From Piromyces finnis finn (lineage: Eukaryota > Fungi > Neocallimastigomycota), in contig MCFH01000045.1 in the NCBI GenBank assembly GCA_002104945.1, positions 310,001 through 374,000 of the forward strand: DNA of 64,000 nucleotides, read 5' to 3'. The position numbers were made by a program, and so were the translations under genes. Positions 50,336-57,900 of this stretch are shown here, piece by piece. The notes beneath the pieces were generated by a model. It was not told the origin of the DNA and ran no database searches. It was given only the letters and a program-made list of their open reading frames with translations. Position 1 is the first letter of the stretch, and every line of letters begins with the position of its first letter.

Positions 50336-53300
50336 TCATTTTTTCATTTTTCTATTAGATGAATCTTGAATAACTAGTAAGAATACTTCTTCAAGTGTTG
50401 TTTGACTTACACCCCAATTAGAAATAATATTATCTGGGTTAGAGTCTAAATACTTTATAAACTCAGGAATGTATTTAAGTTGTTCTTTAGTGAAATTGTA
50501 TATCAAAGCACCTGCACTATCATCTTCTAATTTAGCACCAGGAACAAATTCTTGAACTTTATTCTTAACTTCATCAATTTTCTTTTCTTTTGCAATCATA
50601 CTAATACGATAACCAGCACCAAATTTATTTTTTAAATGTACTCCATTGCCCATTGCTTTAATATCTCCATTAGCCATAATAATAATATCATCACCAAGAG
50701 CATCAGCCTCTTCCATAGAATGTGTAGTCTAATTTTTTAAAAATTATTTAAATTGATATTTTAAAATATTTTAGATTTTTCTTTTTTATTAAGTAAATTT
50801 ATATGCTTAGCTCATACCACAATAATACATCTATTCTTTTTAAATTTTTCAATAAATTTCCAAACATATCTTCTATTAAGTGGGTCCATACCTGTTGTTG
50901 GTTCATCAAGTAAAACAACATTTGGATCACCAATAGTAGCAATAATCATAGATAAACGTCTTTTCATACTTAATTTCAATAATTAAATATTTATTTTAAA
51001 ATTATATTAATTATATTTCATAATAAATTTGTTTTTATTTTTATTTTTATTTTTTTTTTCTATGTTTTACCCTCCAGAATAAGTATTTGTCCTAGCATCT
51101 TTTACAGTCCAAAGTTTAACAGCCTTCAATCTTTGTTCTAAAATTTTATCTAAATTATCAGTAGTCACCCCCTTTAATCCAGTATATAAACGTAAATGTT
51201 CCATAGCTGTCATATCAGCATATAGAATATCATGTTGTGGGCAAATACCTAATTCTCTTTGAACTTCATTTAAATTATTTCTTAAAGTTTTACCATAAAC
51301 TGAAACATCACCACATGATGGAGGGGTTAAACCTGCCATAATATTAATTGTTGTTGATTTTCCAGCACCATTTTGACTAATTATCATATATATGTTTATA
51401 AGTTAAATAATATTATTTTATATTAAAAAAAATACATATATTATAATATATTACCCTAAGAATACAACTCTGTATCAATTTAAAAGTAATATAATTGTTA
51501 AAAAATATTAGTAATAATTAGTAAAAAGTTATTAATATCTTAATAAAAAAAAGTATAAAAAATTAATTATTGAAACTAAAAACATACACTCTATCTTTGT
51601 CGAAAGAAAGATATGAACCCTTGACTACTTCTTTTTTATTTTTTCCGCTACCAAAGCTTTTTTTTAAATTTACAACTTTTACTGGACTTTGATTATTTGA
51701 GTCGCAAGTATAATTAATATGATCTAAATAATCTGAATCAATTTTGTTTTTATCATATGTTGGAGGATATTTTTCAGTGGTATTTTTAATCCACTCATTT
51801 CCAGAACTATTTTTATTTTTCGCTCCCCAGTAAGATGGAAGTAAAAAGTAGTAAAATGGTTGGCAATTACCAAATTCATTAGGAATAACATTATCAAAGT
51901 ATAATGTTAAAATAATAAAAATTGCAATATCTAATAACATTAATAATATACATTTTCCTGGTGTGTTAAGATAAACTAAATCCAAAACCATATTAATAAA
52001 TGAATCTGCTGGAATCACTGATAAATCTTTCATACCAAATCCAGTACCCTTAACAACAGAACCAGTAATAACATTTACCGATGAACCTGATTTTGATGAA
52101 ATATCAAAATAGACTCTTCCGAAATTGAAAAATGGTAATATGGAAAAAACTATATTTTTTATATTATTCATTGTTTTAAAAATTTATTTAAGTCATATTG
52201 TTATATAAAAGTATATTAATCATATAAACTTAAAAAAGAAACTTACTATATCTAAAGATTGAATTAACAGAATTACTCCACCAAATATATGCAAGATAAG
52301 CATTTGAAAAAAGAAAAGACTGGAAAAGGAAACCGATAATTAATACAAATATACCTGAAAGAAGTATATATTATAACAATTAAAGATAAAACAATATTCC
52401 TTATTTTAAAAATAAAATTTTTATTAAAATAATAATAAAGATGTTTATAAAATAAGGATATCAGCTGAACGAGATGAATTCACAAATGTTGTAAGTAAGA
52501 ATCCTAATGTAATCATTGCAATGCCAAAAATAAAAAATAAAATAAATAATATCTATATATATAAATGTTAATTATTTAGAGTTCTCATCCATATTATTAT
52601 ATTATATTTTAAATAAATACATACAAATATGTTGGTATTTAAAAAGAAAGAATATTGAAAGAGCATTCCAAATGCAATAGTAGCTATTGTGTTAATAAAT
52701 ATAAGAACGAAGTATATAATAAACCAGCTTAACCAATAAACACTTTTATATAAACCCATCATTTCCATACAAAAACGGATTTTACTTTCTTTTTCTGCTA
52801 CAATAGTATTTAAACAGTTAATAAAAATTACCATAGCAGAACAGAAAAAGAAAACTGAACCAAGAGATGATATAACAGATTCACCAAGATTTTCTTGAGC
52901 AATTTTAGGATAATCTTTTAAATTAACATCGAAACTTGCCTTAATATTTGGATTACCATTAGCATAGCTTGCTATAATATTTTATATTTTATAAATCATT
53001 TAATATTTTATATAATATATATTTATAATTATTTTATTATTTCATTTATTAACCAATTGCTTCATCAATTCCACGAGAAACACTTAAAACTCTTGATCCT
53101 AGAGTATCAGTTTGATTTTTATTTAAAGTTGAATTATACCATATTTGATAACGATAATTTGTAATATCATTATCTTTCTTTATATCAAATAATACACCAA
53201 AAAATGTATAATTTTGGTGATTTAATGCATAATCATACATAAAATTACTATTTGGAACATGGATTACATCGTGTCTTTTAGTAACTGTATAGCTCAATTT

Positions 53301-54037
53301 TGTTTCTAAATAATTATGTATAATAAAAATAAGTTTTTTTTTTCTTTTTCTAGTAATATAAATTTTTATTAATATTATATATTATACCATCCCAGTCTTC
53401 CCATTTACTAGAATCAGTTTCCCAATTAAGTCCCATTCTTTCATTATTTTTTTCCACGTAATTTTCTAAAATTTTATCAACTTCTGAATCTCTTTGACAA
53501 ATAGCACCATCAATACAGTTAGTAAACATTAAATTTATACAATTTCCTTCTAAATTAATTGGACCCTGAAAATATAGAATAATACATTTTCAATATATAA
53601 ATATAATATTTATATGTGAATTTTTTCATAGATATTTCATACTTTGCAATTTTCAATACCACTTAGAGGATAAGACTCTGGATGTAATATTTCTTTTCCA
53701 TTTTGATTCACTGCTAATAATTGAAGTAACTCTAAAAGAATCATTACAATAAGCGGAGTTATAATCGTCATTAAAAGAGTAGATTTCCAAAATCGCAACT
53801 AATATAATAATATTGTTATTATATTAATTCAATAGTTATTTAATAAAATAATAAAAATATATCAAAATTATAAAAATATCATTTTCATACTTGTAATACA
53901 AAGTTTTTATTTAACATTATTTTTAACTGCTTTTTCCATATCGTAAACCCACTATTTTTTTTACTATCATTATTATCCCATAACATAATATCAAAATCGT
54001 CATCATCTATGTTATTTTTATTTTTATCTTCTGTCAT
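50336..54037 (-). CDS. Half-size ABCA-subfamily transporter (paralog 'A'); many exons including a U12-type intron and a 15-nt microexon
   Basis: IVAEKESKIRFCMEMMGL, YFDNVIP.EFG, Walker A GQNGAGKST, GICPQHDIL, signature YSGGMKRRLS, Walker B LLDEPTTG, THSMEEAD, SQTTLEEVF. Confidence 0.9.
51455..51469 (-). other. 15-nt microexon (AGTTGTATTCTTAGG) in ABCA paralog A
   Basis: Bounded by tacag and gtaata. It restores DRVVVFLG|QNGAGKS, colinear with NKVVALLGQNGAGKS in paralog C. Confidence 0.8.
52364..52461 (-). other. U12-type AT-AC intron (98 nt) in ABCA paralog A
   Basis: 5' end ATATCCTTAT, branch-like TCTTTAAT about 15 nt from the 3' end, 3' end TATAC. Removal gives SRSA-V-LSGIFVLIIG; retention hits TAA. 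Confidence 0.85.
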
Positions 54038-54951: not shown

Positions 54952-57900
54952 CTATGATGCATCAGCATCATCATCAGAAATAATACTAAGGAATACTTCT
55001 TCTAATGATGATTGTGAAATACCCCAATCAGTTATACCATATTTTTCTTTATTATTTTCTAATTCTTCGAACAGTTTAGATATTAAACCTTTTGTTGGTA
55101 TAAATTCATATATACTTGTAGATGTTAAATCACGTACTGCTTTGTATTCAGATGGTAAAAGATTAATAATAAATTCTTTTAATTCCTTATACTTTTCTGG
55201 TTGATTACTATAAGAAAGTTTAAAACCGGATCCATATAATTCTTTAAGACGTAATTGTGTAGCACAGCAACGGAGTGTTCCGTGAGACATAATACCAATA
55301 CGATGGCATAATACTTCTGCTTCCTCCATAGAATGAGTTGTAATTATGATTGTTCTGTTTTGACTAATTTCATTTAAAATACCCCAAATTAATCTTCTAA
55401 CATCCGGATCAAGACCAGTAGTTGGTTCATCTAAAAATACTAGTTTTGGATCACCAACAAGAGCAATAGCTATACTTAAACGACGTTTTTCACCTCCACT
55501 TAAACCTTTGACTTTACTGTCTCTAAAGGATTCTAAACCAACACTGGACATACTTTCTACTATTGAAGCTTCTTCTTGATCTTGTGGAATACCTTTTAAT
55601 CTAGCATAGAATAAAAGATGTTCTTCAACTGTTAAGTCATTCCAAAGAATATCATGTTGTGGACAAATACCAATACGTTTATACACTTGATCCATATCTG
55701 TTTTAACATTAAAACCAGCCAATTTTGCATATCCATTTGTTAAAGTATAAACACCAATTAAAGAATGAATCAATGTTGTCTTTCCTGCACCATTTGGACC
55801 TAATAAACCAAATACAATACCTTCTTCAACAGCAAAAGTTACACTATGAACAGCAACATGTGGTTTACCTCCTTTAACTCTTGGGGCATATTCTTTTCTA
55901 GCATTTTTAATAATTAATGGACTGTTATGATCATATTTACCACTAATAACCCTATTTCTTTCAGCTCTTACATCATCATCTTCTAAAGTTTTTGCAGCTC
56001 TCTCTTCTTCTTCTGTATAGAATGGGTTCTTATTAGCTTCGTCGGCATTTTCAATTACTATTTTGTCCTTTCCATTAAATAATTTTTTAATTCTTGATAC
56101 AATATTTAAATGCCATGGTAAATGATTACCAAATTCTTGTGGAATAACTGCATCAAAGTATAATGAAAGAAGCATAAAGATAAAGAAATCAAAAATTAAA
56201 AACATAGTAGCAGTGAATACTTTATTACCAGGAACAAAATTAAATAATTGGTATGCTGGATTTATTTTTGAAACTGAAAGAGTTGAAAGTATACTTAAAA
56301 TATAATAAAATGCAAATGGTGGCCAAATAAAATAGAAATTTGTAGTTTCAAATATTTCGATTAAACCAAGACTGAAAACAATACTAAGTAATACAATTAA
56401 AAATGACGCAATTAATGCTGTTCCATTTCTACTAAAGAAGAATGATAAAACAAAAGCCATAGCTACTTGTATATTTGCCCATATAAAGAATACAATAATT
56501 AATACAACAATCGAGGTTTTAATAAACATATTCATATTACAAATCATTCCTGCAATTATAAAGCATGCCATAGATAGCATACTTAAGCATAAATTTGTTA
56601 TATATACAGATATATAATAAGTTGATGATTTCATTCCGTTCATATTCATCATTACTAAGAATCTTTCTTCTTTTTCTTTAACTAATCCAATTACAAAAAT
56701 TGGAATTAAGAAACTAACACCCCATGGGAATAATGCAATACCAATCATGCTAGGTAAATCAATTGGTAAACCAGATTCAATATTTTCTGGGAAGGATCTA
56801 AATCCTTGAGTTATGGAAACTTTATTATCTGTTATTTTTTTAACTATAGCATTACTTGTTTCAGTTAAGAAATATGCTAATCTTTTGCCTCTTCCAGGAA
56901 AAGACATATAGGGCGTGACGTCACCACATACCTCACAACTATATAAACTAGCCAATTTTCTATTCTCACCAACAGCAATTACTAGATTGTAATTTAATTT
57001 TTCTTCATTAACATCTTTAAAATACACTACACCATAAGGCATATAATTTACACTTTTTTTAATAGCATCTTCTGTATTATCAAAAACAGATAAATCAATT
57101 TGTTGTTTTTCTTCTTCAGTGTATGAATCAAATGAAGAATTTGATAAAATTTTATTAACCCTTTTTTTCGTTCGGAATTATTTATTTATATATAAATATT
57201 TATATTGATTTATAAATTTATATTAATATAATTATTGGTTAGTTTTAAAAATACTAATTTTTTACTTTTTTTATAAAAAAAATAATGATTTAATAAAAAT
57301 ATTATAATTACAATTTTATTCTTTTAGTTAGCAAATCATCTACATCATTATCATCATCAACTTCCAAAACTTCGAAATATGGAACTCTTTCAAAAGATAA
57401 AACACCCTTAGAAAGAGAACCTATATCTAACATATAGCGAGAATAAGTATAATCTAAATAGCCTTTATTGGATAATGTATATTGATCGGAATTAATTGTT
57501 TGGAATGTTATTCCTTTTGGTCCCTCTTTACGTTCACCAATTAATGTCTTTTCAGTCACATTATGTTTATTAACAGCAATAAAACCCCATGGTCGAATTA
57601 TATTATCTGTAATATATTTCAAAATCAATGAGTCTCTATTAGCATATTGACTTATATCAAATGCTCTTTTACTTTTACTATTATTTTTATTATTAAATAT
57701 TTTTATTTGCTTAGTAATATCTTTAAGTGCATTGTATCCTTTCATCATTTCTGAAAGTTGTTTTTGTATTATGTTTGCAATATATAGATAATTTCCATTT
57801 TTTCCTTCGATATCCACGGATGGAATAAAAAGTGTATCACGATTTATATTAGCTTCATTATTTTGAGGAACAGTATCATAAGGAAATGATTCGAAATGAT

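Follow-up and report, generated by a model that had tools for sequence, protein, structure and literature searches.

The window analysed here is a stretch of 64,000 nucleotides of Piromyces finnis DNA, in which a tandem array of ABCA genes occupies the minus strand between 50336 and 64000. The array consists of paralog A (50336-54037), a differently built ABCA gene with a 696-aa exon at 54952-57042 and further upstream exons that probably reach ~58934, and paralog C, which extends from 61166 to beyond 64000. In Anaeromyces robustus, the A-type and the C-type gene lie directly side by side on a single scaffold. The features of paralog A and of its sister paralog that matter for the following are these, a slash marking a splice boundary:

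50336-54037, minus strand: ABCA gene paralog A, NCBI BCR36DRAFT_334597 (P0005, Piromyces finnis), 904 aa in 13 exons; 11 of the introns are GT-AG and one is AT-AC
52462-52552, minus strand: upstream exon 6, residues 361-390 and the first base of V391; positions 1229-1318 of the mRNA contig L004 align to 52551-52462
52364-52461, minus strand: U12-type AT-AC intron, 98 nt, phase 1, splitting the V391 codon as G/TT, 10% G+C; the sole junction that reproduces P0005 residues 390-392
52454-52461, minus strand: minor-type 5' splice site ATATCCTT, followed by an A; invariant in all seven homologous introns
52379-52386, minus strand: branch-site box TCTTTAAT, matching TCCTTAAY at 7/8 positions, its second A 16 nt from the last intron base
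52364-52365, minus strand: 3' terminal AC, lying inside an invariant ATAC/TTCT
52247-52363, minus strand: downstream exon 7, from the rest of V391 to the split codon I430; L004 1319-1408 aligns to 52363-52274
52355-52470, minus strand: cryptic in-frame GT-AG pair, C/GTTCAG ... TTTCAG/GT, 116 nt; its use would delete SAVLSG (18 nt); unused in the public model and in L004
51455-51469, minus strand: 15-nt micro-exon AGTTGTATTCTTAGG between two GT-AG introns, encoding VVFLG just before Walker A; present in the public model and in L004
62806-62889, minus strand: homologous AT-AC intron of paralog C, 84 nt; ATATCCTTT ... TTCTTAAC (12 nt) ... CATAC

The public protein of paralog A was retrieved when the natural ORF from an orthologous contig served as query, and all 904 of its 904 residues map exactly to the minus strand of the window, in 13 exons between 54037 and 50339. 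An exhaustive search for exon boundaries consistent with this protein left, at that place, no canonical junction other than the AT-AC one from 52461 to 52364 that yields its sequence, while the boundaries that reproduce the protein at the remaining 11 introns are all GT-AG. Precomputed Pfam domains for the protein are PF12698, PF00005 and PF13304; it thus shows the ABCA-type order, in which an ABC_tran nucleotide-binding domain comes after an ABC2_membrane_3 transmembrane domain. A reading of paralog A as a pseudogene was ruled out, all 13 exons being intact and identical to the public protein. The apparent absence of a strand before Walker A was likewise accounted for, by the 15-nt micro-exon, which restores the motif GQNGAGKST and is also found in the orthologous mRNA, there as DKDRVVVFLGQNGAGKST; its absence would cost the nucleotide-binding domain one strand as well as the first glycine of the P-loop.

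The exon on the 5' side of the AT-AC intron ends, on the minus strand, in ...AAT TCA TCT CGT TCA GCT G with its last base at 52462, and the intron opens from 52461 as ATATCCTTAT. Its tail, ...ATATAC, runs to 52364, after which the exon resumes from 52363 with TT CTT TCA GGT ATA TTT. If the intron is left in place, translation reads ...SSRSADILIL and then meets a stop after six codons of read-through, exactly as the initial annotation had described for GCT GAT ATC CTT ATT TTA; that annotation had also placed the intron elements on the minus strand, and all of them are indeed found at the coordinates given above. Removal of 52461-52364 yields SSRSAVLSGIFVLIIGF, so that the AT-AC termini restore the reading frame. 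The intron begins with a 5' site of the form /[AG]TATCCTT, namely ATATCCTT at 52461-52454, and has a TCCTTAAC-like branch box in the range of ~10-20 nt before the 3' site, namely TCTTTAAT at 16 nt, which agrees at 7/8 positions when Y is allowed at the last one; both are the hallmarks of the U12 type. By itself, the ATATCCTT motif is not significant, because six copies are seen in this window of ~20% G+C where 5.9 are expected. What rises above chance is the position of the motif, which recurs in the same codon phase in paralog C as well as in five more homologous genes. The four copies outside the ABCA genes, at 2155, 12429, 16230 and 54660, were considered and set aside as chance matches, having no coding context, no upstream ORF and no well-placed branch box.

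Scanning of JGI metagenome and metatranscriptome contigs by alignment of exon-8 peptides led to an intron-free mRNA contig of 3058 nt, Ga0138317_1006981 from JGI sample 3300010976 (L004). It holds a single uninterrupted ORF of 903 aa that is 84% identical to P0005, and comes from a different but closely related organism. When the contig is aligned with the window, the aligned blocks are the exons of paralog A; block 1229-1318 directly adjoins block 1319-1408, so that 1318/1319 of the contig is the equivalent of 52462/52363, and the sequence at this junction is TCTCGTTCAGCTG/TTCTTTCAGGTAT. The message of a close relative therefore joins the bases that flank the AT and the AC, and does so without the GT-AG pair. 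A protein search with P0005:300-480 for partial transcript ORFs across the junction gave none, its matches being only genomic exon-5 fragments, and a word search with exon 8 alone gave three orthologous genomic exon ORFs and no transcripts. A further contig, Ga0138317_1028316 (L002/L005), carries at 1-270 a G+C-rich stretch that does not resemble the fungal sequence, joined to the intron and exon 8 of an A-type ABCA; the contig may be a chimeric assembly or a piece of unspliced RNA.

The intron could be compared in seven homologous copies, five of the A type and two of the C type: those of paralogs A and C in the window (the latter being the one C-type copy that the window holds), and those of four genomic A-type orthologs, L001 (a Logan run), L003 (an ENA assembly), L016 (Anaeromyces robustus) and L017 (Neocallimastix californiae), together with an additional C-type gene from A. 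robustus (L022). In paralog C, the public model P0014 (BCR36DRAFT_359698) reads KSKTAVLIGIS across 62889-62806, and its intron lies at the same codon position and in the same phase; the proposed colinearity of the two paralogs after AT-AC splicing is supported. Both ATATCCTT and ATAC/TTCT are conserved in all seven copies. The branch box agrees with TCCTTAAY at 7/8 or 8/8 positions in each of the seven, with its second A between 11 and 18 nt from the 3' end. The individual boxes and their distances to the 3' end are as follows:

P. finnis A: TCTTTAAT, 16 nt
L003: TCCTTAAT, 16 nt
L001: TTCTTAAC, 16 nt
A. robustus A: GCCTTAAT, 11 nt
N. californiae A: TCCATAAT, 18 nt
P. finnis C: TTCTTAAC, 12 nt
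A. robustus C: TCCTTAAT, 11 nt

Outside these elements, the interiors of the seven introns have a mean identity of 66.3%, against 66.0% after shuffling, while the 30-nt exon flanks are 89.5% identical. Within the intron sequence, it is the minor-spliceosome signals alone that are held constant, and this is the signature expected of a functional U12-type intron. The seven-way comparison shows strong purifying selection on the U12 signals, with the rest of the intron randomised. Across the junction itself, the protein motif A-[VI]-L-x-G-I is kept in 44 of 46 fungal homologs.

We thus consider it very probable that 52461-52364 is a genuine, functional U12-dependent AT-AC intron, and that the ABCA half-transporter gene in which it lies is expressed in Piromyces finnis. 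The claim of the initial annotation that paralog A contains such an intron is supported by its anatomy, by the seven-fold conservation of its position, by the spliced mRNA of the ortholog and by the public model. The possibility that the major (U2-dependent) spliceosome removes the intron has to be considered, since rare U2-type AT-AC introns exist, as reportedly described by Dietrich, Incorvaia and Padgett in 1997. Introns of that kind have a major-type 5' consensus, roughly ATAAGT, and are without a TCCTTAAC box; the paralog A intron has neither a major-type 5' site nor an empty branch region. Against this reading it also counts that all seven copies retain ATATCCTT and, at 11-18 nt, a branch box, in introns whose remaining sequence is randomised, and we regard removal by the major spliceosome as almost certainly wrong.

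The GT-AG pair that was said to overlap the AT-AC intron is present at 52470 and 52355 and would remove six residues. If it were used in vivo, for the main or a substantial isoform, the product would read SSR/IFVL, six residues shorter, and the two spliceosomes would be in competition for the same transcript. The pair keeps the reading frame and has a good acceptor, TTTCAG; in addition, the public model of A. robustus takes the equivalent pair, whose donor, GTATAG, comes nearer to the U2 consensus. That model carries a partial flag and was probably called ab initio. The donor GTTCAG of paralog A, however, is a poor fit to the U2 donors of the same gene, 10 of 11 of which begin with GTA and none of 11 of which has C at +4. 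It is present in the A-type copies because of their R-S codons, and is absent in the C-type paralogs, where the corresponding sequence is AAG ACA GCT G. The six residues are retained both in the L004 mRNA and in the P. finnis model and are conserved in 44 of 46 homologs; because A-[VI]-L-x-G-I is kept in these 44, the GT-AG alternative would delete conserved transmembrane residues. Use of the GT-AG pair in vivo is thus very unlikely, and removal of 52461-52364 at its AT and AC termini remains the reading that we prefer.

It had further been proposed that the paralog A intron is weakening, that is, decaying toward U2 conversion or loss and inefficiently spliced from a degenerate branch site. 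This view can draw on the branch box, which is TCTTTAAT and not TCCTTAAC, on the +9 position of the 5' site, which is A in paralog A and T in the other six homologous copies, on the in-frame GT-AG pair nearby, and on a related paralog in Piromyces sp. E2 that has cleanly lost the intron. The box deviates at exactly one position in five of the seven copies, however, and each time at a different one, only L003 and the C-type copy of A. robustus matching at 8/8; because it is usual in this family for the box to deviate once, and at a position that varies, the paralog A intron is no outlier. Its box, at 7/8, scores as do those of four of the six other copies, and the 16-nt spacing is kept, being equal to that of the close orthologs L001 and L003. 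The 8-nt core of the 5' site is moreover intact in an intron of 10% G+C, and the E2 paralog lost its intron by deletion and not by conversion. The proposed weakening and U12-to-U2 conversion thus find no support in these comparisons, and we judge decay of this intron to be highly improbable.

The expectation that gene predictors would mis-splice the intron turned out to be wrong for the P. finnis copy, because the public model BCR36DRAFT_334597 already uses the AT-AC junction, and right for the models of A. robustus and N. californiae. Among the 46 aligned homologs, two depart from the A-[VI]-L-x-G-I motif, and both are public ortholog models, P0008 and P0007. The A. robustus model P0008, flagged partial, is without exactly six residues, a gap whose only possible source is a GT-AG intron at L016:2513-2629 (MCFG01000070.1) with the boundaries tctc/GTATAG ... 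TTTCAG/ga; this GT-AG intron overlaps an intact AT-AC intron, ATATCCTTT ... GCCTTAAT ... ATAC, at L016:2522-2620. In the N. californiae model P0007 (768 aa), exon 5 is joined straight to exon 8, so that both exons flanking the AT-AC intron, the equivalent of P0005 residues 362-429, are skipped; exon 2 and the 15-nt micro-exon are skipped as well. Here, too, an intact AT-AC intron is found in the genome, at L017:3410-3498 (MCOG01000188.1). The deviations of P0008 and P0007 are most likely annotation errors. They represent two correctable errors in public annotation, by which A. robustus loses six conserved transmembrane residues and N. californiae loses the two flanking exons and the micro-exon.

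With regard to the age of the intron, homologs from Spizellomyces sp., Gigaspora rosea, Batrachochytrium salamandrivorans and Paraglomus occultum show no interruption at the site, and the homolog of Gonapodya prolifera has a GT-AG intron (L020:2330-2392) 14 nt downstream of the AT-AC site. In a quick tree, with SH-aLRT support only and midpoint rooting, all 23 of 23 gut-fungus sequences fall in one clade, in which the A-type is sister to the rest and the C-type is sister to a group that holds the Piromyces sp. E2 paralog without an intron at the site. This paralog, P0016 (KZ150989.1), is a more divergent ABCA with continuous coding sequence at L021:2651-2701; its nesting in a clade sister to the C-type, together with the uninterrupted site, suggests a clean deletion of a U12 intron. 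By parsimony, the AT-AC intron would have been present before the ABCA family expanded in the gut fungi, and would then have been cleanly deleted in the E2 paralog. Because the intron is found in both deep Neocallimastigomycota ABCA clades (A and C) and is absent at the site in five outgroups, we may also consider that the anaerobic gut fungi acquired this minor intron on their stem lineage and did not inherit it, although we regard such a gain as rather unlikely. Were it a true gain, it would join a very small number of U12-intron gains that have been documented outside Physarum.

We suggest that removal of the intron would proceed as follows. U11, and later U6atac, would recognise /ATATCCTT at 52461-52454, and U12 would pair with TCTTTAAT at 52386-52379, where C-to-T changes may leave G-U wobble pairs, as judged from the conserved branch-pairing box of human U12 snRNA. 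The AC at 52365-52364, which lies 16 nt from the branch A and is the first suitable one at the correct distance, would then serve as the 3' site, and the joining of 52462 to 52363 would restore codon GTT (V391) in the conserved transmembrane segment ...SSRSA-V-LSGIFVLIIGF. We infer both the identity of the acting snRNPs and the exclusive use of 52462/52363 by P. finnis transcripts. An Rfam scan found no minor snRNA genes within the 64-kb window, nor did any other family match, and a tRNA scan of the window found no tRNA genes. With no minor snRNA gene in the window, the minor machinery itself therefore rests on the literature: Larue & Roy 2023 (NAR 51:10884, PMC10639083) describe P. finnis as having both minor introns and minor snRNAs, with many if not all of U11, U12, U4atac and U6atac present; one supplementary file of the paper makes no mention of P. 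finnis or of two other fungi looked for. Compared with the Neocallimastigomycota minor introns of Larue & Roy 2023 (PMC10639083), the present intron is of the same class and from the same organism, and lies within the public annotation that such surveys classify.

Within the window, the closest counterpart of the paralog A intron is its sister in paralog C, with which it shares codon position, phase, ATATCCTT, ATAC/TTCT and gene family, the two genes standing in one tandem array; the sister differs in having TTCTTAAC at 12 nt and an upstream exon without the cryptic GT donor. The AT-AC subtype of minor-spliceosome introns reportedly goes back to Hall and Padgett in 1994 and to Tarn and Steitz in 1996. 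The paralog A intron resembles the U12-type AT-AC introns in its /ATATCCTT 5' site, in a TCCTTAAY-like box near the 3' end and in its AC terminus, as well as in having no requirement for a polypyrimidine tract, a non-zero phase and a position conserved across orthologs and paralogs. It differs from them in no essential respect: the branch box has one C-to-T change, the interior is extremely AT-rich at 10% G+C, and the branch-to-3' distance is 16 nt, against an optimum of 11-13 nt for U12-type introns.

Because the public model splices 52461-52364 correctly and minor splicing has been published for P. finnis, the paralog A intron is an ordinary, already-known example of a U12-type AT-AC intron. 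Its significance for biology at large is accordingly low, and its use is that of a clean positive control for the detection of minor introns in an extremely AT-rich genome.
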